DNA of 64,000 nt from Dendrobates tinctorius (GCF_039654945.1 NW_027361993.1:10416001-10480000); one strand, 5' to 3'. Counted from the first letter of the stretch, positions 6,120 to 63,418 are shown. Notes: generated from the letters alone by a model not told the origin. Translations and numbers: made by a program.

Positions 6120-6373
6120 CTTTCCCACACTTTCATGTCTGTCTGCACAATACCCACTCCAGATGCTATCCTGCTCTATCACAGTTTACTGAGACACACG
6201 TCCATTGTCCCCGCAGCAGTGGGATTGGAGGGTGAGTGTGGGAACCTCTTGTAAGTCCGCTCTCCACACATCATTATGCAGGGAGAGGGGTATATAGAGG
6301 GGAGGCCGCTCACTAGTAGTCAGACAGCTCCTGCCCCACACAGCACAAGACTACAGACTGCCAGACCTGCACC
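6120..6373 (+). promoter_or_regulatory. Notch-responsive promoter of copy 1
   Basis: CSL/RBPJ sites TTTCCCACAC (6121) and GTGTGGGAA (6236-6244), inverted CCAAT (GATTGG), SOX-like CATTGT, TATATAG 6291-6297, N-boxes CACTAG 6311 and CACAAG 6344. Confidence 0.8.
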
Positions 6374-7344
6374 ATGGCCCCATGTAATATGAGGACCCCG
6401 GACCATCAGGCTGACAGCGGCCTCAGAAAGGTAAGAGCCCCCCGACTAGTGGCAGCGTCCCCCCCATATATCTACACGTAGAAACTTATAGGAACAGGAG
6501 TCGGATGTTTTCCAAGTTGTCATCCATAGACATGGCCACTGGCGCAGGGTAATAATGAGAGATTCTTCTTTTCTGCAGCTGAGGAAGCCGGTGATTGAGA
6601 AGTTGAGGAGAGATCGCATTAACAGCAGCATTGAGCAGCTCCGCGTCTTACTGGAGAAGGAGTTTCAGAGACATCAGCTCCCCTCCAAACCGGAGAAAGC
6701 CGATATCCTGGAGATGACGGTCACCTTCCTGCAGCGGCACATGGCGGAGAGAGGTAAGTGTCGTGTCCGCACTCCTCACACCCCTCACGTGTTTCTTAAT
6801 GGATGAGTGCTGTGTTTATTATATTGTTTCTTAAAGTAGGGTCATAAATCTGATTATTCTGATCTGACTTTGATGTCATCCGAGTGCGGTCCGATTTTTT
6901 CCACGGATACATAGACTTGCATTCCCAATTTTGTTCAGACACTCGGATCAAAATTGGACGTCTCCGATTTTTTTTCCTCTGTCATGTGAACAGCCCCATA
7001 GAATATCATAGGTATAAGTGCTATCCTTAAAAAACTCTGATAGCACTCGTGTGGGAAAATTGTGTGCATGACCCTTTATAGAGAGCAGAACAGCCGGTGA
7101 TGGACGCTGTCACTGATATGTTGTCTTTCCTGTTCTAGATGTCACAGCCTCCAGCCAGGCCCAGAGAGAAGGCTACTCCACCTGCGCCCAGGACGCCGTC
7201 ACCTTCTTACCAGTCCCGAATCAACAAGATGGCTCCTTCTGCAGTGGCTACCCTGTATCCTATGAGCTGTCTACCATGAAGACTTCTAAGAAAGCAAGTC
7301 CATTCACTGGGAACAAGAATAAATCTATGTGGAGACCCTGGTGA
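6374..7344 (+). CDS. hes5: HES5-like bHLH-Orange-WRPW repressor, copy 1 (145 aa, divergent C-terminus)
   Basis: Exons 6374-6430, 6579-6753, 7139-7344 with GT..AG introns. Spliced protein: MAPCNMRTPDHQADSGLRK|LRKPVIEKLRRDRINSSIEQLRVLLEKEF..KPEKADILEMTVTFL..|DVTASSQAQREGYSTCAQDAVTFLPVPNQQ..KSMWRPW*. RKPVxEKxRRDRINSSIEQL is the HES5-type basic/helix 1. Paralog number cannot be assigned. Confidence 0.93.
6839..7074. mobile_element. Old MITE-like insertion in intron 2 of copy 1
   Basis: Ends GGGTCAT..ATGACCC with internal TCCGATTTTTT inverted repeats; absent from copies 3 and 4. Confidence 0.55.
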
Positions 7345-8991
7345 ATAATGACCAAGGCATTGACCATATCATGGACTGGTCTAAGATGGTCACTTTATGC
7401 CATTATGGTCTATTTGACCCCGGACGATCCTTAGTACATGGACATTTGTGCAGTGATGATGATAATGACGATGAGACGTCCACTCTGCTAGTTAAGGGGT
7501 GACCTAAAGAAGCCAAGCCTTTCTTATAGAAAGTCCTGTTTTTCCTTCTCTTAGGGAAGTTATATTGAAGTTCCTACATCGGGGACAAAATGTTAACTGA
7601 TTATGAGTTGTGTCATTTTTATGTATTTTCACATATGCCTATTTCTGTGGAGCCACATAGTGCGCTCCTCCTATCAATGAAAAGTCCTGCCGTATTTTGT
7701 ACTCAGGCCATGATGCACCCACGACGAGGGTTAGGACCTGATGGACTCTAATAATATGTTCCTTCTCTTCTGTGAAGATGCTATTTAGGGTTAACACTGA
7801 TAATGTGCATTCCTTAGGTAGACCAATGTCTTGGTCTGTAGCAGTTTGGGGGGTTATTGAGTTGGAAAAAGTTTTTTTATGGTTTGTTAAAAAACTTCTG
7901 TAATTTCTGTGAAATGTATTCATTCACATGCCGAATCAATGTCATTCAATAAGTATGAGATGTCGCATTGTGTTACATGCAGATGTTTGGATTTATTACA
8001 TCGCTGTCAGTACCCAATAAAATAAATTATTATTATTACAGAAATGTTTTCATCAATAAATTAATATAAATAAATAAGAAATGCAGAAGTGTTAAAGTAG
8101 TTGTTCAGGATTAGAAAAATAAAATATGTTCTCTTCTTTCTAAAAACAGCCCCATATCTGTCTGCAGATTTTATGTGACATTGCAGCTCATCCCTACTCA
8201 CTTCAATGGTGCTGAGATGCAATACCACACACGGCCTGTAGATAGGTGGGGCACTTTTTTTGGAAGAAAGCAGTCATGTTTTAATTCTTGGCAAAACCTT
8301 AAAACAATACAGTGTAGTAAGTAAAACAACACATTTCATTCTGCTAAAGGGGTTAGTTATTGGTGGTCAGTCCTTAGTCGGTGCTGTGGCCCCAAGACTT
8401 ACCTGGTCAGTGGGGGTGCCAGGACTCAGACCCCCTATAGATGAAATCATCTGACGTAAGGATAGGCCATCAATATTACAATCCTGGTAATAAATGACAT
8501 TATAGCAACTGTTATGACACTTTACTCTACAAGGCCAATAGTTATGGGTGCCAAATCTGTGGCAATATCTGCCTTTCAGGAGCTAGGGATAGCTGGGTGA
8601 CATAGCTAGGGTTTTGGTTCGGGGGGGCGAAACTTCTGAGTGGGCCGCTAACCAGACAACCTCAGCAGATGACCGCGCTGTTGCCAAAAATAATCTATAT
8701 ATAAAAAGACCAGTATTGACATTACCGCCATATGGTCAGTGGTAAATAATACCAGTCCTACAAAACGTATGGTAGATTACAGCAGAGTTACAGATAATGA
8801 CTTACCGCTGACGTTCTTTCTGATGGAATCGTTCACTTTTCCAGTCTTTCCCATCTGGCCCAGACCGACATGACGACTCCTCCAGCCAGGACTCGGCTAC
8901 AGAGAATACAACAAAGACACGTTTCACTTCTCATATTTTCAGCACTGTCACCAATTGGACTATTCTCAACCTGCACAAACTGCTCATCCTG

Positions 8992-9356
8992 CTAATACCC
9001 CAATACTGAGCGGCTGCTGCCGTATGTGTCCCTATTACTGCACCTGATACCCCAATACTGAGCCGCTGCTGCTGTATGTGTCCCTATTACTGCACCTGAT
9101 ACCCCAATACTGAGCGGCTGCTGCTGTATGTGTCCCTATTACTGCACCTGATACCCCAATACTGAGCCGCTGCTGCTGTATGTGTCCCTATTACTGCACC
9201 TGATACCCCAATACTGAGCCGCTGCTGCTGTATGTGTCCCTATTACTTAACCTGATACCCCAATGCTGAGCCGCTGTTGCCATATGTGCCCTATTACTGC
9301 ACCTGATACTCCAATACTGAGTCGCTGCTGCCGTGTGTGTCCCTATTACTGCACCT
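8992..9356. repeat. 52-bp minisatellite (~7 units)
   Basis: Unit CTGATACCCCAATACTGAGCCGCTGCTGCTGTATGTGTCCCTATTACTGCAC. Confidence 0.9.
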
Positions 9357-9404
9357 AATGTGTGGTTCTGTGTGACCTCTAAATTCTAAAGCAACTCTAT
9401 AGAA

Positions 9405-19626: not shown

Positions 19627-20603
19627 TAATACACGGCAGAGGTGGCTGGTAGCCTAGCCAAAGAACTGTACGTTATAAAATAAAAAATCCATCTGTTTTT
19701 GAAAAAGTGGTAAATTGCAAATTTGCTCACTCATTTTAACAACCTTTTTAAGTTTTATTAACATTGAACAAAAACCCTTTGAAGATGTGTTCCCGTGATA
19801 AGTTTTTGGTGAGTTTTTGATGCTTTATTTTCGCTGCATCAATTATCTTGGATTAGAAATCATGGCCACATTTGTATTTGTTCTAGTCCTGGACAACATG
19901 TTTAATAGGATTTGTAGCAAGGACTGCAGCAAATAAATGGGAAGGTGTTTCCCAGCAGACATAATCGGATTCCTGATTGTTTTAAGATAATCATAGATAT
20001 AAGCTTGCTGATAGACATGTTCATCAATTAAAGAACATATGTGATTTGACTCTTGCATGCAGGCAATGAATAAGCGGATGCCTGACAGCTGCAAAGCTTT
20101 GTAGAGCCAATCAATGTCAAAAGTTTAAAAAGCAAAAATACAAAAAGCATTGCTTGAAAATAGGACACTCACAATATTTATAGCAATGAATCCATATTTG
20201 AGGTGCAGAACACAGAATAACTGTAGATATTATAATGTATCCAACAGGACAAATTAGGGAAACTGCAAATAAATAAAATCTGTATAAAACCTTAATCTCA
20301 AAAAAAATAAAAATGCATTCTAGGAGTGATGCATTTAATGCCTCACAAAAAACAATGACATCACATCTAGAATACTTTTGTTTTGTTTATCAGTTAGGTT
20401 TTGATGATTTTTCTGGCACCAAAATATATTTTTTGCTGTGCATCAAAAGAAATAAGATAAATAAAATAAATGTACAAATGCATTAATGTAATCTACAACA
20501 TTTCTTGCCTGATTAGTACTGTCAGGGTCTATGTCATCAACAGGGCCAGATGTTCCCTGACAGTGTCACAGTCTGAGAAAGGGACTAATCTACTGTGCCC
20601 CCT

Positions 20604-20741
20604 GCAATGTGTGTGATTGGATGCAGAGTGTGAGAACCGTGCACAGGACCCTGCTCCACACATCATTTTGCTGAAGGATTGCCCCATATAAAAACCAAAC
20701 CAGCCACTGTCATCTGTTCCCAAACTGACGGCCATGTAAGT
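20604..20741 (+). promoter_or_regulatory. Orphan hes5-type promoter with a very short putative first exon
   Basis: GATTGG, GTGTGAGAA (20628-20636), TCCACACATCATT (20655), TATAAAA (20687) in the same order and spacing as the hes5 promoters; then GCCAT|GTAAGT. Confidence 0.6.
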
Positions 20742-20766
20742 TGTGTGACTTATAAAATGTGAATGT

Positions 20767-20804
<38 letters not shown>

Positions 20805-20811
20805 TATTATA

Positions 20812-23800
20812 TTAATTAAGACTTCAGTCTGCATTGTGATTCCTATAAGTGTGTGCTAGAAGTGTGAAGATTAATTTAAGAATTAAAACCAGAATTGAAC
20901 CAGAAGGGAACTGAAGGTAACTGTACACAGTCACTGTAAACAATGTTTCTGTTTGTTTTCACCCCTATAATCCTTCACTTTCTGCTAATTCCCCTAATCC
21001 CTACTCCTAGTAAGGAACTGTTCATCTCTTCTTCAATCCTCCCCATCCACCTCACCTCCACCTCAAAACTGTTCCTTACCATACAGTCTCCAAACACAGA
21101 CAGCCCCCTCATTCCCTCTCCTGCTCCCACCTGCTAACACTTTCTCTGCTCCTTCTCACTGCTGGTGATATCTCCCCAAATCATGGTCCTCCTCACCACA
21201 TTCCCACAGTCATTTCTACCTCCCATCCACGCTCTATCACAACCTTCCGTAACCTCTCCAACCTTATACCCATTCACCCGGCCCCCGCTTCCCCAGTCCC
21301 ACTAACAGGAGCTCTGTGGAACGCTCGCTCTGTTTGCAACAAGCTTTCCTACATCCATGATCTTTTTGTTACTACCAAACTTTCCTTCCTCGCCATCAAC
21401 GAAACCTGGCTCACCCCTTCTGACACAGCCTCTCCTGCTGCACTTTCATATGGTGGCTTCCACCTTTCTCACACCCCCCGCCCCAGCAGCAAACATGGCG
21501 GAGGAGTTGGTTTTCTCCTTTCAGATACCTGCTCCTTCACCCCAATCTCACTGCCACCCTCTGTTACCCTCCCTTCCTTTGAGGTGCACTCTGTGCGCAT
21601 CTACTCCCCCTCCCACCTCCAACTGGCTGTCATCTACCGCCCCCCAGGGCCAGCCACCACCTTCTTTGACCACTTCACCACCTGGCTACTTCATTTCCTT
21701 TCCGCGGACATCCCTACTATCATCATGGGCGACTTCAACATCCCCATTGACACTTCCCTCTCAGCTGCCACTAAACTCCTATCTCTCACTTCCTCCTTCG
21801 GCCTCACTCAATGGTCTTCTACAGCCACCCACAAAGATGGCCACACACTGGACCTCATCTTCACCCAACTCTGCTCCCTATCTAACCTCTCTAACTCACC
21901 TCTTCCTCTCTCTGACCACAACCTTCTCACATTCTCTTCCCTCTTCACTCCATGTCTACAATCCCCACCCCACAAACTTTCACACCCTTGCAGAAATCTT
22001 AAACACCTTGACCAACACTCGTTCTCTGAATCCCTTCTCCCTCTCACAGATATAAGTTCCTTACACAATGCGGATGACGCTGCCGCTCTATATAACACCA
22101 CAATAGCTGTAGCTTTGGAATCCGCTGCCCCACTTACACATACCAAAGCTCACAAAATCAACAGACAGCCCTGGCACACCAGCCTGACCAAAGTGCTGAG
22201 GCGAGCTTCCAGGGCTGCTGAGCGCAGATGGAAAAGATCCCACTCCAACGAGCACTTCATCGCATTCAAACAGTCCCTCACTACTTTCAAGACCACACTC
22301 GCCACAGCTAAACAAACCTACTTCTCATCTCTCATATCCTCCCTGTCTCACAACCCTAAACAGTTATTCAACACCTTCAATTCTCTCCTCCACCCCCCAG
22401 CACCTCCTCCCTCCCCACTCATCTCAGCTGAAGACTTTGCCTCATTTTTCAAGCAGAAGATTGATAACATCAGAGAAAGTTTTGGTCAACAACCCCCAGA
22501 ACCCTTCCTCCCGACTTCCCAGCCCTCCACCTTCAAAACCAACTTCTCCACCATTACAGAAGATCGACTCTCCACTCTACTCTCAAGATCACATGTCACC
22601 ACCTGTGCACTCGACCCGATCCCATCCCACTTCATACCAAACCTCACCACAGTCTTCATCCCAACCCTAACCCATCTCTTCAACCTATCACTAACAACTG
22701 GTGTTTTCCCCTCAAGCTTTAAACATGCCTCCATCACACCTATCCTCAAAAAGCCCTCTCTTGACCCATCCTCTGTATCTAGCTATCGCCCTATATCACT
22801 TCTCCCCTACGCCTCCAAGCTACTGGAACAACACGTCTACCTTGAACTGTCCTCCCATCTCTCTTCTTGCTCCCTCTTCGACCGCTTACAATCTGGCTTC
22901 CGGTCACAACACTCCACTGAAACTGCCCTTACTAAGGTCACCAATGACCTCTTAACCGCCAAGAGCAAGCGACACTACTCTGTCCTCCTCCTCCTGGACC
23001 TGTCGGCTGCCTTTGACACAGTGGACCATTCCCTATTATTACAGACCCTCTCATCCCTCGGCATCACAGACTTGGCCCTATCCTGGATCTCATCATACCT
23101 AACAGACCGGACATTCAGCGTCTCCCACTCACACACCACCTCCTCACCTCGCCCCCTATCTGTCGGAGTCCCACAAGGTTCAGTCCTTGGGCCCCTGCTG
23201 TTCTCTATTTACACCTTTGGCCTGGGACAGCTCATAGAATCTCATGGCTTTCAGTATCATCTCTACGCTGATGACACACAGATCTACATCTCTGGACCAG
23301 ATATCACCTCCCTACTAACCAGAATCCCTCAATGTCTGTCCACTATTTCATCCTTCTTCTCCGCTAGATTTCTGAAACTCAACATGGACAAAACAGAATT
23401 CATCATCTTTCCCCCATCTCACGTGACCCCCCCTACGAACCTATCAATTACAGTAAATGACTGCCCACTCTCCCCAGTCCCACAAGCTCGCTGCCTCGGA
23501 GTAATCCTTGACGCTAATCTCTCCTTCAAACCACATATCCAAGCCCTTTCCACTTCCTGCCGACTTCAACTCAAAAATATTTCACGAATCCGTTCATTCC
23601 TCACCCAAGAATCTGCAAAAACCCTAGTCCATGCCCTCATCATCTCTTGCCTTGACTACTGCAACCTCCTGCTCTGTGGCCTCCCCTCAAACACTGTCGC
23701 ACCCCTCCAATCTATTCTAAACTCTGCTGCCCGACTAATCCACCTGTCCCCCCCGCTATTCCCCAGCTTCTCCCCTCTGTCAATCCCTTCACTTGCTCCC

Positions 23801-24319
23801 AATTGCCCAGAGACTCCATTACAAAACCCTAACCATGACATACAAAGCAATCCACAACCTGTCTCCTCCATACATCTGTGACCTCGTCTCCCGGTACTTT
23901 CCTGCACGCAACCTCCGAGATCCTCACAAGATCTCCTTCTCTACTCCCCTCTTATCTCCTCTTCCCACAATCGCATACAAAATTTCTCTCGCGCATCACC
24001 CCTACTCTGGAACTCTCTACCACAACATATAAGACTCTCACCTACCATCGAAACCTTCAAAAAGAGCCTGAAGACCCACCTCTTCCAACAAGCCTACAAC
24101 CTGCAGTAACCACCGATCGACCAAACCGCTGCATGACCAGCTCTACCCTCGCCTACTGTATTATCACCCATCCCTTGTAGATTGTGAGCCCTCGCGGGCA
24201 GGGTCCTCTCTCCTCCTGTACCAGTTATGATTTGTATTGTTTAAGATTATTGTACTTGTTTTTATGTATACCGCTCCTCACATGTAAAGCGCCATGGAAT
24301 AAATGGCGCTATAACAATA

Positions 24320-24706: not shown

Positions 24707-24923
24707 NNNNNNNNNNNNNNNNNNNNNNNNNNNNNNNNNNNNNNNNNNNNNNNNNNNNNNNNNNNNNNNNNNNNNNNNNNNNNNNNNNNNNNNNNNNNNN
24801 NNNNNNNNNNNNNNNNNNNNNNNNNNNNNNNNNNNNNNNNNNNNNNNNNNNNNNNNNNNNNNNNNNNNNNNNNNNNNNNNNNNNNNNNNNNNNNNNNNNN
24901 NNNNNNNNNNNNNNNNNNNNNNN
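24707..24923. other. Assembly gap
   Basis: 217 N. Confidence 1.
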
Positions 24924-28343: not shown

Positions 28344-29691
28344 TATATATATATATGTGACACACATACTGTATATATATATATGTATTTATATTGCATA
28401 CAGAGATAGAAGAAAAGTCGGTAATACATCTGCCGGGTTCTGTAAAATCACTGCAGGAGCAGACAGGATAGAAGAGATGGATTACTTACAGTAAATACAA
28501 ATAGAGTAAGTAGATATATAGATGTCAGTGACAAATACAGAGTAAGGGCTCATACTCACTTGCGAGAGACTCGCACCATTCTCGTGCGAGTCTCTCGCAC
28601 TAATACCCGGCACTGCCGCCGGCACTTGGACCGGAGCTTGCGGCTACATGTATTTCTATGCAGCCGCACACTCCAGTCCCAGTGCCAGCGGCAGTGCCAG
28701 GTTATCATGCAAGAGACTCGCACGAGAATGGTGCGAGTCTCTCGCAAGTGGGTATGAGCCCGAATACAAAGGGTAGCCAGCTCACTGTCTTTAGATGCCC
28801 AGCGTGCACGGACAACGCACTGACCGGCGGGAATAGAACAAATAGAAAGAAAAGTCCAGCTTCTGGTAGAAAAAAAAAAATTTTCATAAAAATTTCCTTT
28901 ACTCCAAAAATGATTAAAAATCCGTATGCAAACAGTGGGGAACAGGAGAACACATGGCGACACGTTTGGAGTGCAAGCAGCGCTCTTTCCCAAAACCTAA
29001 TGTCAAAAAATTTCCCTCAAACCTTATATACAAGAATGAAACTCTCCCATTGGTGAAAGATCATACGACATTTAAAATACATGCAAAATACAAATCAACT
29101 AACCTGTTTAGTATCACTAGATATCACAAAATAAATCAAAACAATGAGATTATACATCATGAGAAAAACACATCTAATAATGACACATAACATCTCGACG
29201 AAAATTTTAGCCGTCTGGTCTGGATATCTTGTTCCCAGCTGGAAAATCCAGAAGGCTTCTTTGGTAAGTAAAAGTCTCCTGAGAAAATCCCGAAGGCTTC
29301 TCTGGTAAGTAAAAGTCTCCTGAGATCACCACCTCGGGGCGGTAAATTCACTCTTTTAAATGCAAAAACCTGGAATGAAGATAGGGATCTGTAAGGACAA
29401 GTAATAAAGTGTTTAGATGCAGCAGATATATTCCAGTTATTCAAACTACTGGTATTAGTGATGTCATTTAAATGTTCCTTGATGTGTGTCTTCATTTTCC
29501 GACTAGTACATCCAATATATAATAAATTACAAGGCACGCATCGGTTTCAATAAATGACATCATCTTAATTACAATTAATGTACTGTTTAATTAGATTAGT
29601 TTGTGTACCATCATAGTTATGAAAAGTGCTGCATGGGTATGCAAATTTACAAAGTTTACATTGCATTGCCCCACATTTAAAGAAACCCTTA

Positions 29692-33460: not shown

Positions 33461-35089
<1,629 letters not shown>

Positions 35090-39900: not shown

Positions 39901-41081
39901 ATGGCCCCATGTAATATGAGGACCCCGGACCATCAGGCTGACAGCGGCCTCAGAAAGGTAAGAGCCCCCCGACTAGTGGCAGCGTCCCCCCATATCTCTA
40001 CATGTAGAAACTTATAGGAACAGGAGTCAGAGATGTTTTCCAAGTTGTCATCCATAGACATGGCCACTGGCGCAGGGTAATAATGAGAGATTCTTTTCTG
40101 CAGCTGAGGAAGCCGGTGATTGAGAAGATGAGGAGAGATCGGATTAACAGCAGCATTGAGCAGCTCCGCATCTTACTGGAGAAGGAGTTTCAGAGACATC
40201 AGCTCCCCTCCAAACCGGAGAAAGCCGATATCCTGGAGATGACGGTCACCTTCCTGCAGCGGCACATGGAGGAGAGGGGTAAGTGTCGTGTCCGCACTCC
40301 TCATACCCCTCACGTGTTTCTTAGGCCTCTTTCACACTTCAGTTTTTTACAATCAGTCACAATCCGCTAGGTTTTGAAAAAAACGGATCCTCAATTTTCT
40401 TTTGAGGATCCGTTTTTTTCCCCATTGACTTCCATTACTGGCGGATTGTGACGGATTGCCGTCCGTTGCATCCGTTTTTTTTGAGGATCCGCCAAAACTT
40501 GCTGTCCGTCACCATCCTCAAAGATTTCAAAACGGAGCTTGCAACGTTTTTTTTTTCTGGCGGATCCTCCAGACACTAATTTAACCCGATATTCTTCCTG
40601 AGTGCCGGACAAAAAAAAAATCTCTCTCTCTCGGCCAGCGTTTCCTTTAAATTTCCTCATTTTCAGGATCCGTCTGAAAACGGATCCTGTGCCATCCGTT
40701 CACATCAGTTCAGAATGGATCCGCTTGTCTGCCTTTTTGGCGGATTTGAACTGATGCAAAAAACTGAAGTGTGAAAGAGGCCTTACCGAGAGCATAGCAG
40801 CCGGTGATGGACGCTGTCACTGACATGTTATCTTTCCTGTTCTAGATGTCACAGCCTCTAGCCAGGCCCAGAGAGAAGGCTACTCCACCTGCGCCCAGGA
40901 CGCCGTCACCTTCCTGACCCAGCACAAACAGAGCAACCTCCAGATCCAGCTGCTGCAGAACCTCCCTGGGGCTCACACTGTGGTATACAGGGCCGCATCT
41001 CCTCCTGTATCTCCTGTCTACCAGACCCCCAGCAAGTACAGCCCCCCAGACAGCAGCACAGCCTTGTGGAGACCCTGGTAA
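39901..41081 (+). CDS. hes5: HES5-like repressor, copy 2 (155 aa)
   Basis: Exons 39901-39957, 40104-40278, 40846-41081. Intact bHLH and Orange region (EGYSTCAQDAVTFLTQHKQSNLQIQLLQNL); ends ALWRPW-TAA. Confidence 0.95.
40324..40782. mobile_element. 459-bp PIF/Harbinger-like MITE in intron 2 of copy 2
   Basis: TIR GGCCTCTTTCACACTTCAGTTTTTT, TTA duplication; the empty site GTTTC-TTA-CCGAG is seen in copies 3 and 4. Confidence 0.92.
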
Positions 41082-46136: not shown

Positions 46137-46404
46137 CAATGTGTGATTGGTGCAGGTCCCATCTTGTGGCCGGGGTTTCCCACACTCCAGCAGCCTCTAT
46201 TATCTCCTGGATTGGAGCAGATGGACACACGTCCATTGTCCCCGCAGCGGTGGGATTGGAGGGTGAGTGTGGGAACCTCTTGTAAGTCCGCTCTCCACAC
46301 ATCATTATGCAGGGAGAGGGGTATATAGAGGGGAGGCCGCTCACCAGTAGTCAGACAGCTCCTGCCCCACACAGCACAAGACTACAGACTGCCAGACCTG
46401 CACC
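46137..46404 (+). promoter_or_regulatory. Notch-responsive promoter of copy 3
   Basis: Same motif set; similarity to copy 4 starts at CAATGTGTGATTGG. Confidence 0.8.
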
Positions 46405-47125
46405 ATGGCCCCATGTAATATGAGGACCCCGGACCACCAGGCTGACAGCGGCCTCAGAAAGGTAAGAGCCCCCCGACTAGTGGCAGCGTCCCCCCCATAT
46501 ATCTACACGTAGAAACTTATAGGAACAGGAGTCGGATGTTTTCCAAGTTGTCATCCATAGACATGGCCACTGGCGCAGGGTAATAATGAGAGATTCTTCT
46601 TTTCTGCAGCTGAGGAAGCCGGTGATTGAGAAGATGAGGAGAGATCGGATTAACAGCAGCATTGAGCAGCTCCGCATCTTACTGGAGAAGGAGTTTCAGA
46701 GACATCAGCTCCCCTCCAAACCGGAGAAAGCCGATATCCTGGAGATGACGGTCACCTTCCTGCAGCGGCACATGGCGGAGAGAGGTAAGTGTCGTGTCCG
46801 CACTCCTCACACCCCTCACGTGTTTCTTACCGAGAGCAGAGCAGCCGGTGATGGACGCTGTCACTGACATGTTATCTTTCCTGCTCTAGATGTCACAGCC
46901 TCCAGCCAGGCCCAGAGAGAAGGCTACTCCACCTGCGCCCAGGACGCCGTCACCTTCCTGACCCAGCACAAACAGAGCGACCTCCAGGTCCAGCTGCTGC
47001 AGAACCTCCCTGGGGCTCACACTGTGGTATACAGGGCCGTATCGCCTCCTGTATCTTCTGTCTACCAGACCCCCAGCAAGTACAGCCCCCCAGACAGCAG
47101 CACAGCCTTGTGGAGACCCTGGTAG
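46405..47125 (+). CDS. hes5: HES5-like repressor, copy 3 (155 aa)
   Basis: Exons 46405-46461, 46610-46784, 46890-47125; 105-nt intron 2; ends ALWRPW-TAG. Confidence 0.95.
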
Positions 47126-47152: not shown

Positions 47153-48243
47153 CTGGGAGCTGTGTACCCCCAGTATACCTGAGATCCGGGATCTGTGTAC
47201 CCCCAGTATACCCGAGAGCGGGGAGCTGTGTACCCCCAGTATACGAGACAGTGGGGAGCTGTATACCCCTCCAGTATACCTGAGAGCAGGGAGCTGTATA
47301 ACCCCAGTATTCCTGAGTTCTGTGTACCCCCAGTATACCTGAGAGCTGGGCGCTGTGTACACCCAGTGTATACCTGAGAGCTGTTTTACCCCCAGTATTC
47401 CTGAGTGCTCTGTGCCCCCAGTATTCCTGAGAGCTGTGTACCCCCAGTATACCTGAGAGCTGGGGGCTGTGTATCAACAGTATACCTGAGAGCAGGGAGC
47501 TGTGTACCCCGAGTATACCTGAGAGCAGGGAGCTGTGTACCCCGAGTATACCTGAGAGCAGGGAGCTGTGTACCCCCAGTATACCTGAGAGCAGGGAGCT
47601 GTGTACCCCCAGTATACCTGAGAGCTGGGAGCTGTGTACTCCCAGTATACCTGAGAGCAGGGAGCTGTGTACCCCCTGTATACCTGAGAGCAGGGAGCTG
47701 TGCACCCCCAGTATACCTGAGAGCAGGGAGCTGTGTACCCCGAGTATACCTGAGAGCAGGGAGCTGTGTACCCCCAGTATACCTGAGAGCTGGGAGCTGT
47801 GTACCCCCAGTATACCTGAGAGCAGGGAGCTGTGTACCCCCTGTATACCTGAGAGAAGGGAGCTGTGTACCCCCTGTATACCTGAGAGCAGGGAGCTGTG
47901 TACCCCCTGTATACCTGAGAGCAGGGAGCTGTGCACCCCCAGTATACCTGAGAGCAGGGAGCTGTGTACCCCCTGTATACCTGAGAGCAGGGAGCTGTGT
48001 ACCCCCTGTATACCTGAGAGCTGGGAGCTGTGTACCCCCAGTATACCTGAGAGCAGGGAGCTGTGTACCCCCAGTATACCTGAGAGCTGGGAGCTGTGTA
48101 CCCCCAGTATACCTGAGAGCAGGGAGCTGTGTACCCCCTGTATACCTGAGAGCAGGGAGCTGTGTACCCCCTGTATACCTGAGAGCAGGGAGCTGTGCAC
48201 CCCCAGTATACCTGAGAGCAGGGAGCTGTGTACCCCCAGTATG
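47153..48243. repeat. 33-bp minisatellite in the 3' UTR region of copy 3
   Basis: Unit GAGAGCAGGGAGCTGTGTACCCCCAGTATACCT, about 30 units. Confidence 0.95.
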
Positions 48244-50381
48244 CCTGTGGATGTCTTCTTGGTGTAATTACTCTGGGATTTTCTCATCCATCATATAATC
48301 TGCTGTCGGCTGCAGATCTCCTGTGTGCACTCGGTTCTATATCCTTCTATGAAGAACAGTCCTGGTCCTATATGGACACAATGTAGGGATATTCCCAATG
48401 ATACAATGTATCAGATTATATATAGTGTGTTCTGGCTCTATAGAGAGTGACGTATTGTATGTATATATCAGTGCTGCAGTGCAAAGCATTGCAGAATAAT
48501 GGAGGTGAGACCCCCGGCCTGATATATACAGTAGATATTATATATCATTCAGTCTTGTAATCCTACAGACTTCTGTACAGTAATATTTACATTGCTAGAT
48601 TCAGTGTATAGATGTACTGTGTACAGCGCCCCCTATAGTTCACTATTATTAGTGGTTAATGCTCTGTATATTGAATATTCAATAAATTAACAGGAGGCAT
48701 ATTTTCTATGTATGTTCATGATTATTGATTATAATGTAATGCTATGCAGGATGAAGTCATATACTTTACAACAGTATACAATATTTGTAATAATTGTCTC
48801 CTTATAGTTCACTATTATTAGTGGTAAATGTTCTATATATTATACTGTATTATGTGCGTCTGATAAATTATCAGAATATTCTAAATTCTATGAATTGTAC
48901 ATTATGTGATATGTATTATGGATTATTTTATTCCACGGTTTTCCTATATGGTATGCAATATTTGCAACAAATGTTAGAAAGTTATGTATAATATACACTG
49001 TATTGTGCAATATTTGCAGCATTACATCAGTGATGTTCCGTATATTATACACTGACTGCACGTGTCTGTGTACTTTGTATACTCTTATTAGTGGACAATG
49101 TTCAGTTGTCATATATTTTGAAATAAGTTGCAATCAATAAAATAAATTATTGTACATACGCTAAGTTTTCATTAATGTTGTGATGTTTGTACAACGGTAT
49201 TATCCTTAGCCCATCCCCCCATCAAAATCATTTTTCACTGGGGTCCCCCTTTTCAGAATGGTTTTTCATTTATCTCCGCCCCTCCCCTCCGTGATTGACA
49301 GCTCTGACTGATGGAAAAGAAGTAGGTGAGTGGGTGCACTGAACTGTTCGGGCACTATAAGGGTGCACCCAGCCCCTGTGCTTGGTATGAACAGTCATTT
49401 TGTGCTGACAGCAGCACTCCCAGGAATATCTAGATTTCTTAGTCCCTTTGCATAAAGCGTGCTGTACAGTGTGTATGTGGTCCTATATGTACTGATCACT
49501 GTCTTGTATGATATCAGTATAGCTGCTCCTCTTCTCTACCTTGTGACCACATTACAGATTAGCAGCTCACACAGCAGATTCTTTGCTAGACCTGAATTTG
49601 ATTTTTTTAGTGTAACCCTATGAGACTCACATAGAGGCGTTTGTAGGATTGCACTGAGAAAGTGATTTTTGGTCCGCACAAAAGTCTCCATGTTAGACAG
49701 CCAGTCTGAATTGTGGTCTCATGATGCAAAAAAGGATTGAGGATCGCTGATCACATGAGAAGAGAAAGTTAGAAGAAAGAAAAGTAACATTACAGCCATA
49801 ACTTCATAGCTACCATCCTGCTGCATTCTGCCAATTAAATATCCCTCCCATCTTTCTTCAGTCCCCTCCAACATAAAGTCCCATATAAACAACATCAATC
49901 CCCTGTAAAGATAGTGCAAATACACTCGAAGGATCCGGTCCATCCACCACGTCAGTGTTCTGTGGCCACTGTACAGGAGCCCTGAAAACCATTTCTTATT
50001 TGATGGCATCAGCCGCTCTTCTTTTGATTAGCCGATGCCACTATCATCTTTGCAGCGTGATACACATGTGATACCTCCAGTATAATGGCCAAAGGACCGC
50101 GTCCTGTAAATCCATTCGCCCCTGTAACATACAGCTGTGATCACACCAACATTGCTCAATGGTATTGATAAAGATTGGCTAATATTTTAAGCCGAAAGCT
50201 CAAAAATCCCATTTTAACCAATCCAAAATAAAACATAATGTGACAACTGCACATCGCCCCTGCAAAATGGAAGCTCAGATTGGCTGAAGATTGGCAATCA
50301 TAATGATGAGGTCGCTCTGATGTAAGATGGGGTGGGTATACATAGTTTATTCTGCCATACTGATTTGCATTTTGCCTCATT

Positions 50382-53310: not shown

Positions 53311-54754
53311 TTCAGTAATAAATGGGTAAAAGAGGGTGGGGGGTATTTATTTCAAACAAAAGAGTCTGGGACTTTCTTTCAATTAAAGGATTTTATTCTG
53401 GTTATATATTTTTTACAATATGACTATGGGATTAGTAATGTTAATAAAGACGCCTCTCCATTACTAATCTCTGGGCTTGATGTCAGCGTCCATATAACAG
53501 TTGACATCAATCCCAACTCTATTACCCCACTTCCCACTGCACCCGGGCAAGTGGGAAGAGCAAGGCTAAGAGCCAGATTTGGCGCATCTTATGGATGCGC
53601 AATTTCTGGGGTGGCTGAGAGATGATGTTCTTAGTCAGGGAGGGGCCTATATTCATGGCTCTTCTATAGCCTATTATTATCAACCCGCAGCTTTCTGCCT
53701 AGCCTTTGCGCAGGCTATTAATTATAGAGGGGGACCCCACGTCATCTTTTTGGGGTCCCCCATTTTAATAACCAGTAGGCAGCTGTGAGCTGATATTAAT
53801 AGCCGGCAAAGCTATATGTTTATTACCCCCATTCCAGGCTATAAGCATCTGCCCCCATCTGTCAACTTTCCCTCAGCTGGTTATTAAAAATATGGGGGAA
53901 CCCAGTACATTTTTTCTTACATATTTAATTATTAGCTAAACACATATATAATCAGTGCAATGCAGCTTACTGTAGATCTTAATTGTATCTATTGATCTAA
54001 TTATCGATCTACCTATCTAAATCTGTATCTGAGATTGTTTTATTAGTTACTAAACTAGCTTGAAATGACATAGAGAATTCCTGTATGTAAAAGTTGATGT
54101 TAAAAACACATTGCATATGGATTTGCATATAGATGTCATATGGATACTGTGTGAAAAGAATTGCATTGTACTTACATGACACTTGTACTTCTTTCAGGAA
54201 TAACATTGGACCAATTTTGAGTATGAGCCCATAGAAAGAGCAGCTAGTTGGCACCTGACTGTGAGTAGGCAAATCGCATATGTGCTTGGGAGTGGAGGAA
54301 CGCCTAACTGAATTCTTACCCTGTATGCTGGAAAACCTGGATACACCTGTGAACGATGGCATGGGAAAGATCACGTAGAATCCCACCACTGTCATCACAT
54401 GTGACGAACCCCGCAACCCGCCACCTGCCTGACGTCACTATTCGTAGATTGCCCAAAATTTGAAAAATGTTTGCTTCCCTGCGTAAAGAGCATCACATCT
54501 GTCCAGGTGTTATACCTGTTATTAAATCTTAGCATTATTGACCTGAACGGGGCTGAGGTGCATCAACGCACACTTATCTTATGGACAGGTTGGGCACTGT
54601 TTATGGAAGAATACAGCCATGTTATTCTTAAATATCCCTTTTATTAATAAGCGATGGTTCACTCAAGTTGGAATTGCTGTATACAATTTTGCAACGATTT
54701 TTGGGGAAATCTATAAATAAAATCTAAGCTGAGTTGTGTGGATATTGGTGCAGA

Positions 54755-57700
54755 TTTACAAGTTACAAGGACACTAAACTTCAGGAAGGCAAATTTCCAA
54801 CGGATGAGAGATGATCTTGGTGCAATTAACTGGGACGATATCCTGAGACTTAAAATTACACAAAGAAAATGGGAGACGTTTATTAGCATCCTGAATAGGA
54901 CCTGTGCACAATATATACCATATGGGAATAAACATGCAAGAAATAGGAGGAAACCACTATGGCTAAATAGAGCTGTAAGAGGCGCAATAGGTGACAAAAA
55001 GAAAGTATTTAGAGAATTAAAGCAAGGAGGTAGTGATGAGGCATTAACTAAATACAGAAAATTAAATAAATTCTGTAAAAAGCAAATCAAAACAGCAAAA
55101 ATTGAGACAGAGAGACTCATTGCCAGAGAAAGTAAAAATAATCCCAAAATATTCTTTAACTACATAAATAGTAAGAAACTAAAAAATGATAGTGTTGGCC
55201 CCCTTAAAAATAGTCTGGGTGAAATGGTGGATGAGGATGAGGAAAAAGCCAATATGCTAAATGACTTTTTTTCATCAGTATTTACACAAGAAAATTCCAT
55301 GACGGATAACATGATCAGTGATAAAAATTCTCCGTTAAATGTCACCTGCTTAACCCAGCAGGAAGTACGGCGGCGTCTAAAAATCACTAAAATTGACAAA
55401 TCCCCGGGCCCGGATGGGATACACCTCCGAGTACTGCAGGAATTAAGCACAGTCATAGATAGACCATTATTTTTAATTTTTAAAGATTCCATAATAACAT
55501 TGTCTGTACCACAGGACTGGTGTATAGCAAATGTGGTGCCAATATTCAAAAAGGGGACAAAAACTGAACTTGGAAATTATAGGCCAGTGAGTTTAACCTC
55601 AACTGTGGGTAAAATCCTGGAGGGTTTTCTAAGAGATACTATACTGGAGTATCTGGAGAAGAATAAACTTATGACCCAATATCAACATGGGTTTGCAAGG
55701 GACCGTTCGTGTCAGACTAATCTGATAAGCTTTTATGAAGAGGTAAGTTCCGGACTGGACCAAGGGAATGCAGTGGATGTGGTGTACATGGACTTTTCAA
55801 AAGCTTTTGATACGGTGCCACACAAAAGGTTGATACATAAAATGAAAACAATGGGGATAGGGGAAAATACGTGTAAATGGGTTAAGAGCTGGCTCAGGGA
55901 TAGGAAACAAAGGGTGGTTATTAATGGAGCACACTCAGACTGGGTCACGGTTAGCAGTGGGGTACCACAGGGGTCAGTTTTGGGCCCGCTTCTTTTTAAC
56001 ATATTTATTAATGACCTTGTAGGGGGCATAGAGAGTAGAATTTCAATATTTGCAGATAACACTAAACTCTGCAGGGTAATCAATACAGAGGAGGACAATT
56101 TTATATTACAGGAGGATTTATGTAAACTAGAAGCTTGGGCTGATAAATGGCAAATGAACTTTAATGGGGATAAATGTAAGATCATGCACTTGGGTAGAAA
56201 AAACACGATGTATAATTATGTGCTTAATTGTAAAACACTGGGCAAAACAGTCACTGAAAAAGACCTGGGTGTATGGGTGGACGACAAACTCACATTTAGC
56301 GGCCAGTGTCAGGCAGCTGCTGCAAAGGCAAATAAAATAATGGGATGCATTAAAAGAGGCATAGATGCCCATGAGGAGAACATAATTTTACCTCTATATA
56401 AGTCACTAGTGCGACCACACTTAGAATACTGTGTACAGTTCTGCGCAATATGGAAAAAAATTCCAGCATCCAGATCAGTAATTAGATTAAAAAATTTTTT
56501 ATTCCTTTATTCCAAAATTTAAAAAAATCATAAGATTCTCCATCATGATAAGAGACGCATCAGGACGTGTAGTTGGACGCGTTTCGGACAAAAAACCAGT
56601 CCTTATTCTAAGACAACACATAATACATCTGAACACATGCTTATAAAGGGAAACAAAGGAAGTCAAGGAACAATCAAGACTAAACATAGCCAGCTGATTA
56701 ATGGGAGGTAGTAAGTCAAAATCACACTTACAAAACACTCAAAATCTCACTCCTAATATTCATACCCGTTGGAACTCTGCTTTGTAACAATAACATCCAT
56801 TTTGCCTCTCGGCGTAATAATAAATCATTTAAATTTCCACCTACCCTCTTTGTCTGCACCTTCTCTATGGCATTAACCCTAAAGTTGCTGAGATCTCCTT
56901 TATGTATATGCAAAAAATGTCGAGAAGCAGCAGACAAACTGCGTGTAGTAGTGTGACCTACGTCATAAACGTGCTCGGAAATACGACGTCTCAAGGTGCG
57001 TGAAGTATTTCCCACATACTGAATATTACAATCCACGCATGTTATGACATAGATCACACCAGTAGAACCACAGTTCAAAAAAGATTTTATTTTAAATTCC
57101 TTTCCATTAACAGAAGATACTATTTTTTCTGTGTTCCACATAAACCTACAAAGCCCACAGTTTTTCTGAGCACATTTAAAAGATCCACAAGTGGGTAACC
57201 AATTAGTTATACTTGCTGAACTGTCTGAAAAAAATTTATTAGCATGTCTATTGACACTAGTATGATCACTTGGAGATACCTTATTAGCAATAGTTTTATT
57301 CCTCCTTGAAACAAATCTAATCCCATCCTTCAGTATATTCTTTAATGTATCATCAACATACAAAATAGGGAGGAATTTTTTAATAATATGAACAATCCTG
57401 TAGTAGTCAGTACTAAAATTAGTTGAAAAAACAATAGGTGACCGACCCCCCACAGAATTTGGTGTTTTTCTGCTTTCCTTCTGCAAATAATCCTCTCTAC
57501 TTTTTTCATCCGTTCTATGCTTAGCTTTCTGAATGTCTACCTTAGTATAACCCCTTTTTATAAAACGTTTACCAATGATCTCACATTGTTTATCGTATAA
57601 ATTAGGCGTGGTACATGTTCTTTTTGCTCTTACAAACTCCCCTGTAGGTATATTGGCTATAACATGACGTGGATAACAGCTAGATGCGTGTAACAGTGAA

Positions 57701-60036
57701 TTACCTGCCGTAGGTTTTCTAAAAATATCACAATCAATCTTTCTTTCTTCCAAATTTGCCGACAAAAGAATATCCAAAAACGAAATTGTCTTGGCATCAA
57801 ATTGATGTGTGAAACGTATATTGCATGGATTATTATTAATATAGAACATGAAATTCTCAATATTAAATACATCACCATCCCACACAATTATAACATCATC
57901 AATAAATCTCAAAAAAAGAAAAATATCAGAAGAAAAAGGATTTTTTTCAGAAAAAATATACTCCTCCTCCCACCAGGCCATAAAAATATTAGCAAGAGAC
58001 GGTGAAAACTTGGAACCCATGGAACAGCCTTGCACCTGTAAATAAAGATCATCCAAAAAAGAAAAAAAATTGTTTTTTAACAAAAAATAGGTCACTTCAA
58101 TCAAATACATCTGTAAATCTTCTGAAAAATTACTGTATTTCTGTAAATAAGTAGTAAGAGCCAAAATAGCCAAATCGTGTGGGATGGAAGTGTACAAACT
58201 TTGTACATCACAAGTGAGCCAACAAAAGGAACTTCGCCATTCCACCTGAGAAAAAATACTAAGAACATGCTTCGAATCCTGCACATAGCTAGGTGAAATA
58301 GTGGCTAGAGGTTTTAATCTTGCATCCAACCATTCCGACAAGTTTTCATTAAGAGATCCTATGCCCGATATGATAGGACGAAACAAAGGTGGAAAAACCT
58401 CCTTATGAACTTTTGGAAGTGCATGTAACAAAGGAACTCTGGGATATAAAGGACAGAAAAATTCACATTGTTTCTGATTAATAATTCCCAAACTAAAACC
58501 CCTATGTAACAATTCCTGTAATTCCATTCTGATGTTATCTGTAGGGTTATAATTAATTCCCTTGTATACCTCACTATTAAAAAGCATAGCCCTCACCTCT
58601 CTTTCATACAGCCCAGTATCTAATATGGTCACAGATCCCCTCTTGTCAGAATTTCTTACCACGATATTGACATTAGCAGATAACAAATCAAGTGCCTGTT
58701 TCTCAGTACGAGAAATGTTAGAACGACCATTCTGATTAGCATTATAGATTTTCATAAGTTCATCCTCAACAAGAAATTGAAAATCATCCATAACTTGCAA
58801 TTTTGACTGCTCAGGATAATATCTAGGATTAGGGACTCTAGAGGAAAAATTAACATCAGTTAAATACGTTAACTTAGAACCAGATTCAGACAAGTCCCTC
58901 AAATTCTTTAGGGTAACTTGCTCCTGGAAAGAAGTAGGCATAAATTCCTCAGGAACTTTATCAACATATTCATCATTGATATTGGAAGTTTTTTCACGTT
59001 CCACATCTTCTGCAAAAAAATGTCTCCTAAGAGTCAATCTTCTCATAAAGTGATTAACATCAAGCATAGTGTTGAATAAGTCCATTTTCGCTGTAGGCAC
59101 AAAATTAAGACCCCTTTCAAGGATATTAATTTGATCAGTCGATAAAATCGATGCAGAAAGGTTCAGGACTGTAAAATTATCAGTTGTATCTAAGCATGCT
59201 TGTTCCGCGCTGATCTCCTGAATTCTCTTATGATGGGAGTGTTTCCTCCCTGATCTCCTCTGACGTTTCTTTTTCCTGAACAGTTTTTTGAAAAACTACT
59301 GCTTTGTGAAATCCGCTGCCCCACATCCCGTGCACACATAAGTCACTAGTGCGACCACACATAGAATACTGTGTACAGTTCTGGTCTCCGGTGTATAAGA
59401 AAGACATAGCTGAACTGGAGCGGGTGCAGAGAAGAGCGACCAAGGTTATTAGGGAACTAGGGGGTCTGCAATACCAAGACAGGTTATTACACTTGGGGTT
59501 ATTTAGTTTGGAGAATCGAAGGCTTAGGGGTGATCTTATTACAATGTATAAATATATGTGGGGACAATACAAAGAGCTTTCTAATGATCTTTTTACTCTT
59601 AGACCTGTGACGGGGACAAGGGGGCATCCTCTACGTCTGGAGGAAAGAAGGTTTAAGCATACTCACAGATGCGGATTCTTTACTGTAAGAGCAGTGAGAC
59701 TATGGAACTCTCTGCCATATGATGTTGTAATGAGTGATTCCCTACTAAAATGTAAGAAGGCACTGGATGCCTTTCTTGAAAAGTATAATAATACAGGGTA
59801 TATACACTAGTTTCCTTAATATTGCGTTGATCCAGGGAGCTAGTCTGATTGCCGTATGTGGAGTCGGGAAGGAATTTTTTTCCCCAATGTGAAGCTTACT
59901 GTTTGCCACATGGGGTTTTTTTTGCCTTCCTCTGGATCAACATGTTAGGGCAAGTTAGGATAGGATATGGGTTGAACTAGATGGACTTAAAGTCTTCCTT
60001 CAACGTTAATAACTATGTTACTATGTTACTATGTTA
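54755..60036 (+). mobile_element. 5'-truncated CR1 LINE split by a Penelope-like insertion
   Basis: RT motifs [39 protein letters not shown] (catalytic D mutated). The frame continues at 59338 (RPHIEYCVQFWSP..LRGDLI..TRGH); (ACTATGTT)n tail at ~60012-60036. Confidence 0.93.
56444..59337 (-). mobile_element. Penelope-like retroelement (Neptune-type) with an uninterrupted RT + GIY-YIG frame
   Basis: Stop-free frame 59295-56728 including VLNLS..LERGLNFVPT, FRPIISG, DVQSLYTSI, MGSKFSP, RFIDD, Cys-rich linker CAQKNCGLC, VIYVITC..YVGNTSR..RISEH. No upstream ATG, so 5' damaged. Confidence 0.93.
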
Positions 60037-61590: not shown

Positions 61591-62429
61591 TTAAGAGGTT
61601 TCGCAGCATTGCAGCATCTTATTTGTTTCTTACTACTGTAGTGCAGCGGAGTTGGTGCAGTGTGACAGATAGGCAGGGACCACAGGAAAGTTCACAGCAA
61701 ACGTGTTTAATGTCCAAAAACTCAAACAGTGCACAGCATATGGTGTCCTCCAGATCGCAGCAGTGGCACCACAACAGTCCATACACGAGAACGGTTGCTG
61801 AGGGCGACTGCACCACCGTATCACGCTGCGGGGTGCCAGGCGTTCGCTGCTCTGGGCTCTGTGTTACCTTACAAAGGCTTGACACTGCAAAGCCACCTGC
61901 TCTGCTACTTGTAAACAAACACTGACATACAAACCCTATACTGCAGGGATTTTAACTTGAATCTGTGGCAGTGGGCCACTTGTAAGACCCGGCTTAGAGG
62001 AAGCGGACCGCCCCACTACTGTCCTGTAGTCCGCTTCAAAAATGAAAGCCCTTAGAGGGTTTTCCTGAACATTGCCTTGGCCAAATAGCTTGAAAAGGTC
62101 CACACTCTTTTACTTTGCCTTGTGACTCACACTTGTCCTGCTGTGAATACAAGCCACTCTAGCGGGTCTAATAGGACGCCGTCCGCATCCTGGGAGATAC
62201 ATAACGACCCTCGCATATGATTCCCCTCACTGCCTCACACTACTTTAATATTATTATTACTACTAGAGGTAATAATTTTACATGTGAGGGACAATTCACT
62301 TACATTATAGTTATATAATTATTATTTCTTTTGAATTTCTCAAATTTTCTGTTAGTAAGAATTAGGATATTTTAACATTTCCTCTGTCATATAAGAATGG
62401 ATCAATAGTGAAAACATCAGTGGTCAGTA

Positions 62430-62697
62430 CAATGTGTGATTGGTGCAGGTCCCATCTTGTGGCCGGGGTTTCCCACACTCCAGCAGCCTCTATTATCTCC
62501 TGGATTGGAGCAGATGGACACACGTCCATTGTCCCCGCAGCGGTGGGGTTGGAGGGTGAGTGTGGGAACCTCTTGTAAGTCCGCTCTCCACACATCATTA
62601 TGCAGGGAGAGGGGTATATAGAGGGGAGGCCGCTCACTAGTAGTCAGACAGCTCCTGCCCCACACAGCACAAGACTACAGACTGCCAGACCTGCACC
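62430..62697 (+). promoter_or_regulatory. Notch-responsive promoter of copy 4
   Basis: Same motif set, almost identical to 46137-46404. Confidence 0.8.
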
Positions 62698-63418
62698 ATG
62701 GCCCCATGTAATATGAGGACCCCGGACCACCAGGCTGACAGCGGCCTCAGAAAGGTAAGAGCCCCCCGACTAGTGGCAGCGTCCCCCCCATATATCTACA
62801 CGTAGAAACTTATAGGAACAGGAGTCGGATGTTTTCCAAGTTGTCATCCATAGACATGGCCACTGGCGCAGGGTAATAATGAGAGATTCTTCTTTTCTGC
62901 AGCTGAGGAAGCCGGTGATTGAGAAGATGAGGAGAGATCGGATTAACAGCAGCATTGAGCAGCTCCGCGACTTACTGGAGAAGGAGTTTCAGAGACATCA
63001 GCTCCCCTCCAAACCGGAGAAAGCCGATATCCTGGAGATGACGGTCACCTTCCTGCAGCGGCACATGGCGGAGAGAGGTAAGTGTCGTGTCCGCACTCCT
63101 CACACCCCTCACGTGTTTCTTACCGAGAGCAGAGCAGCCGGTGATGGACGCTGTCACTGACATGTTATCTTTCCTGCTCTAGATGTCACAGCCTCCAGCC
63201 AGGCCCAGAGAGAAGGCTACTCCACCTGCGCCCAGGACGCCGTCACCTTCCTGACCCAGCACAAACAGAGCGACCTCCAGGTCCAGCTGCTGCAGAACCT
63301 CCCTGGGGCTCACACTGTGGTATACAGGGCCGTATCGCCTCCTCTATCTTCTGTCTACCAGACCCCCAACAAATACAGCCCCCCAGACAGCAGCAAAGCC
63401 TTGTGGAGACCCTGGTAG
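62698..63418 (+). CDS. hes5: HES5-like repressor, copy 4 (155 aa)
   Basis: Exons 62698-62754, 62903-63077, 63183-63418; helix-1 variant QLRDLL; ends KALWRPW-TAG. Confidence 0.95.

Follow-up and report, generated by a model that had tools for sequence, protein, structure and literature searches.

How do neighbouring genes come to share near-identical promoters, introns and one DNA-binding module, and to end in different tails? The question is raised by a 64,000-nucleotide (nt) stretch of the Dendrobates tinctorius genome (GCF_039654945.1 NW_027361993.1:10416001-10480000; hereafter the window, with positions counted from its first letter), which is part of the hes5 cluster of this frog and carries four hes5-like gene copies, all on the + strand. 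The original prediction, made from the sequence alone, regarded them as old paralogous loci overwritten by gene conversion. Our analysis upholds that view: the pattern is very probably the product of non-allelic gene conversion, that is, of concerted evolution of the 5′ part of old paralogs that belong to a short-tailed (S) and a long-tailed (L) type and keep independent tails. The evidence consists of an S tail found in 16 species, a region ahead of the break in similarity that groups by species, identical introns, and flanks that cannot be aligned.

Gene models and pattern of identity

Gene models built from the sequence gave four intact three-exon hes5-like frames on the + strand, all with GT..AG introns. 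Copy 1 (type S) has exons at 6374-6430, 6579-6753 and 7139-7344 and encodes 145 amino acids, and the three type L copies encode 155 amino acids each, with exons at 39901-39957, 40104-40278 and 40846-41081 (copy 2; promoter to stop codon, 39671-41081), 46405-46461, 46610-46784 and 46890-47125 (copy 3; 46137-47125), and 62698-62754, 62903-63077 and 63183-63418 (copy 4; 62430-63418). Intron 1 measures 148, 146, 148 and 148 nt and intron 2 measures 385, 567, 105 and 105 nt in copies 1 to 4, the intron 2 lengths being those first reported. WRPW and a stop codon close all four models, all four copies contain LRKPVIEK with the basic-region proline of HES type, and exon 2 encodes the bHLH domain (Pfam HLH, E ~1e-11, 45 bits, cut-off 20.7, for exon 2 of copies 1 and 3). 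Scores for Pfam Hairy_orange lie under the cut-off of 25.3 bits in copy 3 (18.4), copy 2 (15.8) and copy 1 (13.8, the lowest). The predicted products are HES-type repressors, and nearest relatives together with the three-exon structure place the genes in the hes5 subfamily. No further hes exon was found in the window by tblastn beyond those of the four copies.

The genes are already annotated as “HES-5-like” in RefSeq, and three of our models agree residue for residue with entries there: copy 1 with XP_073417840, copy 3 with XP_073417841 and copy 4 with XP_073417843. On visual comparison of the sequences, XP_073417842 (128 amino acids) matches residues 28-155 of copy 2. The 20.8-Mb contig that carries the window also has a fifth long-type gene, XP_073417780, at another place. 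RefSeq also lists an isoform X1 of copy 1 (P0123) in which an alternative N-terminus of 32 residues is spliced to exon 2; a tblastn search with it returned no match in the window.

The four copies were aligned, identity was followed in 50-column windows, and differences were then tallied feature by feature. At the tract edges, aligned identity leaps from noise to 94-100%, and it drops again at the far end. Similarity had been said to start near 6193, 39671, 46137 and 62430, and the same edges were returned by a repeat search and by self-BLAST; its end, predicted in the middle of exon 3 for copy 1 and at the stop codon for copy 2, was found at 7206 and at 41080/41081, respectively. The near-identity claimed for the stretch from promoter through exon 2 amounts to 96-99%, introns included, and continues as far as mid exon 3. 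Intron 1, described as identical in copies 1, 3 and 4, indeed has 0/148 differences among them, and that of copy 2 has three substitutions and three indels relative to the other copies.

Copy 1 is homogenised in two patches on the + strand: 6193-6798, which runs from the promoter through exon 1, intron 1 and exon 2 into intron 2 (99.0% identity to copies 3 and 4 over 606 nt), and 7081-7206, which takes in the last part of intron 2 and 68 nt at the start of exon 3, encoding Orange helix 1 (96.8% identity to copies 3 and 4). Its own part follows at 7207-8038 and consists of the short-type coding tail (7207-7344, with WRPW and stop codon) and a 3′ untranslated region (UTR) that extends to ~8038, with AATAAA at 8016. 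Compared with copy 3, copy 1 differs at 2/181 promoter positions, 1/57 in exon 1, 0/148 in intron 1, 3/175 in exon 2, 4/100 in the shared parts of intron 2 and 0/68 in exon 3 up to the break; past the break there are 55 substitutions and four gaps in 122 positions. The rates in the core (10/729 sites) and past the break (55/122 sites) differ with a Fisher p of 8.7e-42. In the core, copy 1 is no farther from copies 3 and 4 than copy 2 is, whereas no other tail is nearly as divergent as that of copy 1, and this conflict is the incongruence that conversion predicts.

Copy 2 is 96.2% identical to copy 3 over 39671-40323 and 97.3% identical over 40782-41080, with 14 substitutions and four indels in the core and 5/165 differing sites in the tail, which are equal rates (p 0.37). 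Copies 3 and 4 are ~99% identical from 46137 and 62430 across the gene, and remain similar beyond the stop codon, through a 33-nt minisatellite, up to the end of the window. Private differences occur in each of the four copies. When the three 3′ tails and the four upstream flanks were compared with each other by sensitive BLAST (7-letter words), only an AT-rich 43-mer was recovered, and copy 2 had no similarity past its stop codon or upstream of 39671. The original prediction had counted flanks that align as recent whole-unit duplications as evidence against itself; such an alignment was looked for, and the flanks cannot be aligned.

Core and tails across frog species

The stop-to-stop frame around exon 2 was used as a query and hits were scored on exon 2 alone, which gave 737 relatives. 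Nearly all of the best 120, which were inspected, are frog HES-5 or HES-5-like proteins, those of Dendrobatidae being closest. The C-terminal halves of these relatives fall into two tail types: a short type, as in copy 1 (FLPVQNQQD ... VSYELSTM ... NKSMWRPW), and a long type, as in copies 2 to 4 (FLSQHKQ.ELQIQLLQNLPGAH ... WRPW). Both are present in Dendrobates, Ranitomeya, Phyllobates, Anomaloglossus, Rhinoderma, Bufo, Engystomops, Eleutherodactylus, Leptodactylus and Dendropsophus, and also in the ranoids Mantella, Aquarana, Lithobates and Rana. Since S and L tails are thus found in hyloids and ranoids alike, their separation predates the hyloid-ranoid split. No short tail was seen among the listed proteins of Xenopus, Bombina, Ascaphus and pelobatoids.

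We aligned 47 annotated proteins from 16 frog species (neobatrachian) and built separate maximum-likelihood trees for the part before the break (exon 2 and the first 24 codons of exon 3) and for the tails. The pre-break tree groups by species: the species label needs 18 changes for 16 species, and the tail-type label needs 15, versus 14 for random labels. A clade of all S proteins is rejected for this part, being 131 log-likelihood units worse (approximately unbiased test, p-AU 2.9e-9). In the tail tree, S and L separate on one branch with 100/100 support. Lineage-specific residues ahead of the break are common to both types within a lineage, including the A in STCAQDA (D. tinctorius), ARREGY (Ranitomeya), HMMERN (Leptodactylus), TVTLLQQ (Engystomops), and DPPADSG, TVTSLQ and QREEGF (Anomaloglossus). 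On this comparison, the 5′ part is evidently under concerted evolution that has been sustained since before the hyloid-ranoid split. The break lies ~8 codons earlier in ranids, so that the position of the edge is similar and not fixed. In Ranitomeya imitator, one short-type model is confined to 959 nt, which speaks against its having been assembled from two genes.

In other hyloid frogs, the 47-protein alignment also contains two old types of exon 1 (MAPCNMRTP.DHQA.. and MAPYSDSLI..QP) on the same exon 2, which suggests that there is another mosaic joint where exons 1 and 2 meet.

Contig evidence for copy 1 and its expression

The region 5600-8200 was aligned to contigs of four runs, of which the two small ones are RNA of the same organism from two different studies. 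One RNA contig aligns to 6322-6428, 6577-6751 and 7137-7187, with both introns of copy 1 spliced out at GT..AG; because it begins right after template-switch adaptor letters, the transcript would start near 6322, ~30 nt past the TATA box at 6291. Two others, 7158-8018 and 6699-6751 joined to 7137-8038, cross the break at 7206 with no difference and end just past the AATAAA at 8016. The private exon 2 letters of copy 1 (T at 6603 and C at 6617), its splice joints and its tail are present in RNA contigs of these two studies. In the likely source sample, DNA contigs extend over 5734-6248 and 7177-8200 with no difference; as they run over 6193 and 7206, both edges of copy 1 are supported, and the assembly artefact that the original prediction had allowed for finds no footing there. 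The core itself is represented in the source run by a contig of ~2.4 times the flank depth with copy 3 letters, which indicates that the short-word assembly merges copies and that this depth is not a copy number.

An RNA contig that departs from copy 1 at 7206 into long-type letters indicates that long-type genes are expressed too. The second species represented among the contigs has the short-tail exon and 3′ UTR, with 10 substitutions and six indels over 7344-8152 and six other letters over 7164-7349. One RNA contig (run X7, 6578-6728) lacks 3 nt at 6655, has different letters at three further positions and matches none of the four copies, and thus points to an expressed hes5 paralog outside the window. 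A spliced RNA contig from run X6 couples the private exon 2 letters of copy 1 with C at 6406, the letter that copies 3 and 4 carry. This may reflect an allele in which a patch was converted, or else the contig may pass from one copy to another within 48 identical letters.

Probable gene conversion and its alternatives

In the mechanism that we propose, conversion between same-strand neighbours would keep rewriting ~0.7-1 kb of each gene, from just upstream of the distal RBPJ site, via the TATA box and exons and introns 1 and 2, to the end of Orange helix 1. Tracts would end where homology is lost: in copy 1 at codon 101/102, where S and L tails differ, and in copy 2 at the stop codon on one side and, on the other, 5 nt upstream of the distal RBPJ site. 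Beyond these limits, each gene would retain its own tail, 3′ UTR and transposon-rich flanks. Tracts bounded on both sides within ~1 kb are better explained by non-crossover conversion than by one unequal crossover, and we infer that conversion, instead of crossover, is the mechanism. Copy 1 was presumably the recipient, since its flanks and tail have remained its own. The copy 2 tract ends at functional landmarks on either side, as it would if conversion persisted only where selection had kept enough homology; in general, tract limits probably stem from loss of homology together with selection on the tails.

Several observations weigh against this account. The 282-nt insert in intron 2 interrupts the copy 1 tract, so that one has to assume either a pair of tracts or a conversion by which the insert was left in place; the patches on its two sides (99.0% and 96.8% identity to copy 3) do not differ significantly (p 0.076). 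As the DNA common to copies 3 and 4 continues beyond the stop codon, this pair may have arisen by recent duplication, which is here indistinguishable from conversion. The variants had been called a patchwork, with the exon 1 CAT common to copies 1 and 2. The CAT is as described (site 6406 reads T, T, C, C in copies 1 to 4, giving CAT versus CAC, a synonymous change), and conflicting groupings do exist: sites 6406 and 7133 unite copies 1 and 2 against 3 and 4, site 6645 unites copies 1 and 4 against 2 and 3, and all four letter combinations of 6406 and 6645 are present. As a patchwork the pattern is thin, since the mosaic within the window comes down to these three informative sites, one of which (6645) is a CpG. 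The G+C content of the tract (0.49-0.58, introns included, as against 0.37-0.40 in the flanks and 0.46 in the own tail of copy 1) is compatible with GC-biased conversion, but the excess is confounded by promoter and coding content. Finally, the cross-species test used annotated proteins only, with few variable columns, and many forks in the trees are open.

The pattern could also have arisen by recent small duplications, in which a unit of ~1-1.6 kb from promoter to stop codon was copied and the flanks were either not copied or replaced by transposons. Copies 3 and 4, ~99% identical and followed by a common 33-nt minisatellite, look like the outcome of such an event; copies 2 and 3 diverge equally in the core and in exon 3b (p 0.37), as a single date would give; and the spacers are rich in LINE (long interspersed nuclear element), Penelope-like and Tc1 sequences. 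For copy 1 this explanation fails, as its similarity stops in frame in the middle of exon 3 and gives way to an old tail of the other type, which requires homologous exchange. Nor do recent duplications account for species-specific residues common to both types in 16 species, and the edges of copy 2, on the distal RBPJ site and the stop codon, are not expected of a random unit. We therefore consider them an improbable explanation of the whole. Far less credible still is purifying selection alone, with no exchange between copies: the bHLH region is near-invariant across frogs, but introns and synonymous sites are as alike as coding sites, the 5′ part groups by species with a single S clade rejected (p 2.9e-9), and a relic promoter in the same window has drifted to ~70% identity.

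An assembly artefact, with copies collapsed or cross-polished or copy 1 misjoined, would agree with the core contig that has ~2.4 times the flank word depth and copy 3 letters, and with the gap between copies 1 and 2. It is nevertheless extremely improbable, as source-run contigs cross both edges of copy 1, RNA contigs of two studies carry its private letters, joints and tail, the annotations of 15 other species have the same S/L mosaic, and each copy has private differences. Of a different kind is the adaptive reading that the cluster supplies the same repressor with varied intron delays and mRNA half-lives. Its appeal lies in the 3′ UTRs, which are unrelated and of different length, and the 3′ UTR of Hes7 is known to matter for protein level and oscillation (PMC4173035). 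However, the proteins differ, copy 1 being of the conserved short-tail type, and the intron differences consist of a miniature inverted-repeat transposable element (MITE) and a dispersed repeat, which add only 280-460 nt. At the rates at which transcripts are elongated, such a length amounts to seconds of transcription time, and we regard kinetic tuning of this sort as unlikely. Non-allelic gene conversion is left as the explanation that we favour.

Live and relic promoters

The copy 1 promoter has GTGGGAA at 6238 and a TATA box (TATATAG) at 6291. Putative RBPJ-type motifs thus lie ~84 nt (GTGGGAA) and ~176-200 nt (TTCCCAC) upstream of the likely start at 6322, and the promoter is putatively Notch-responsive and RBPJ-driven. 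The distal RBPJ-type site of copy 1, TTTCCCACACT (6118-6128, + strand), is upstream of its homogenised tract, and the same 11 letters occur at 39676, 46177 and 62470; a match of this 11-mer at the equivalent relative place was reached in 6/2000 shuffles. Retention of TTTCCCACACT upstream of the tract suggests that an old paralogous promoter lies beneath the converted promoter of copy 1.

A relic of a fifth hes5-type promoter was found at 20546-20700 (+ strand). It keeps GTGAGAA, CCACACATCATT and TATAAAA, aligns with the live promoters at 66-71% identity (E 2e-8 and 2e-6), and is followed downstream by a LINE open reading frame (ORF) and then by the assembly gap; tblastn found no hes exon near it. 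The relic serves as a gauge of drift and shows how far a copy changes that is not converted.

Inserts, minisatellite and spacers

The extra length of intron 2 in copies 1 and 2 is due to separate inserts. In copy 2, a MITE of 459 nt (40324-40782, + strand) is flanked by a duplicated TTA (40321-40323 and 40783-40785), has 29-nt terminal inverted repeats that are 97% complementary, and corresponds to an empty site in copies 3 and 4; element and duplication together make up the 462 nt by which the intron is longer (459 + 3 = 567 - 105). From the TTA duplication, the element is probably PIF/Harbinger-like. In copy 1, an insert of 282 nt (6799-7080, + strand) stands where copies 3 and 4 read CC, right after the same TTA, and the empty site is evident both from the alignment and from a contig joint (6798>7081) with CC in between. 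Contig depth is 150-660 over 6818-7078 and ~8 in the flanks, and is seen in two species, which indicates a dispersed, genome-wide repeat; the insert has internal inverted repeats only (80-87%). A contig of the second species crosses its right junction, and the insert must therefore have been in place by the time the two species diverged. One common insertion event in intron 2 of copies 1 and 2 was considered and rejected, as the two inserts share no sequence. Intron 2 of copy 3 (46785-46889), at 105 nt, is divisible by three and contains a stop codon; isoforms that retain an in-frame 105-nt intron 2 are annotated in Rhinoderma, Leptodactylus and Bufo (P0026, P0031 and P0041).

Behind copy 3 lies a 33-nt minisatellite (47155-48247, + strand) of ~34 units with the unit GGGAGCTGTGTACCCCCAGTATACCTGAGAGCA, and the same minisatellite lies behind copy 4 (63446-64000, + strand), where it is clipped by the end of the window; both start ~30 nt past the stop codon. 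The first downstream AATAAA motifs are at 8016, 42057 and 48681, exactly as originally predicted. The 3′ UTRs are unrelated in sequence, that of copy 1 measuring ~694 nt and the candidate ones of copies 2 and 3 ~1 kb and ~1.55 kb, respectively; if the AATAAA at 48681 is used, the 3′ UTR of copy 3 would be mostly minisatellite. That it might be the 3′ UTR of copy 2 with a minisatellite added was rejected, since the tails have no BLAST similarity.

The spacers contain a LINE ORF with endonuclease and reverse transcriptase (21584-23881, within a region from 21357), a second reverse-transcriptase ORF (54738-56522, + strand), a Penelope-like ORF with reverse transcriptase and GIY-YIG (56728-59100, - strand) and a fragment of a Tc1/mariner transposase helix-turn-helix domain (33798-34427, + strand). 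Between copies 1 and 2, inverted repeat arms of 167 nt (28373-28539 and 36674-36840, 93% complementary) enclose 8.1 kb. The assembly gap (N, 24707-24923) is intergenic, beside a TATC-type microsatellite and outside all copies, 16.7 kb past the 3′ end of copy 1 and 14.7 kb before the copy 2 promoter, and is crossed by no frame; all that hangs on it is the distance between copies 1 and 2, their adjacency and possible hidden sequence.

The short-tail class

The original prediction treated the cluster as a source of one repressor. This does not hold, as copy 1 encodes another protein, with a short tail and no predicted Orange fold. In AlphaFold models of monomers, built on family alignments, copy 3 has helices at residues 85-103 and 108-115, and copy 1 has nothing folded past residue 83 (predicted local distance difference test, pLDDT, 40-66); the short-type alignment (A1) held one long-type row (P0134), which is no explanation for the missing helices. 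With low confidence, these models put copy 1 in a conserved class that lacks the second Orange helix. It is possible, although rather doubtful, that selection holds the edge at the end of Orange helix 1, and that neobatrachian frogs thereby keep two classes of Hes5 effector, with and without a full Orange domain, on one DNA-binding and dimerisation module and one putatively Notch-responsive promoter, which would evolve in concert. If so, conversion would keep heterodimer partners and their regulation matched while the tails specialise. The comparison in any case defines a conserved short-tail Hes5 class, which is a candidate for a distinct repressor function.

Comparison with known systems

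Tandem hes5.1 and hes5.3 clusters are expanded in Xenopus and Nanorana (Kuretani et al., 2021; PMC8320183), and like the genes described here they consist of tandem three-exon hes5 genes for bHLH-WRPW repressors. That paper makes no mention of conversion, concerted evolution or homogenisation, and the window contains no flanking marker gene that would tie it to hes5.1 or hes5.3 of Xenopus. A literature search on gene conversion or concerted evolution of hes5, her4 or E(spl) returned nothing relevant, which is weak evidence for novelty as few subscription journals were covered. The orthology of frog hes5 genes is notoriously unclear, and one reason would be that trees of the bHLH part report species, not gene identity; because such trees track species, hes5 orthologs should be assigned from tails and synteny.

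Mammalian HES5, with its canonical bHLH, Orange and WRPW, resembles the D. tinctorius copies in the basic-region proline of RKPVIEK, in the WRPW end and in a promoter that combines a TATA box and RBPJ-type sites. The second Orange helix of canonical HES proteins is predicted, with low confidence, to be missing from copy 1 and its orthologs. The locus is a natural example of paralogs whose dimerisation module and putatively Notch-responsive promoter stay identical.

That tandem clusters undergo partial gene conversion has long been well known, and what we describe is an ordinary, if clear, instance of concerted evolution. A parallel is found in the human fetal globin genes HBG1 and HBG2, same-strand neighbours in which the 5′ part and introns are homogenised up to an abrupt intragenic edge and the 3′ parts are older and diverged. 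Unlike in that pair, the edge in hes5 lies near the same codon in many species and parts two tail types that have been kept separate since before the hyloid-ranoid split, and the hes5 tract takes in a promoter with putative Notch-response sites.

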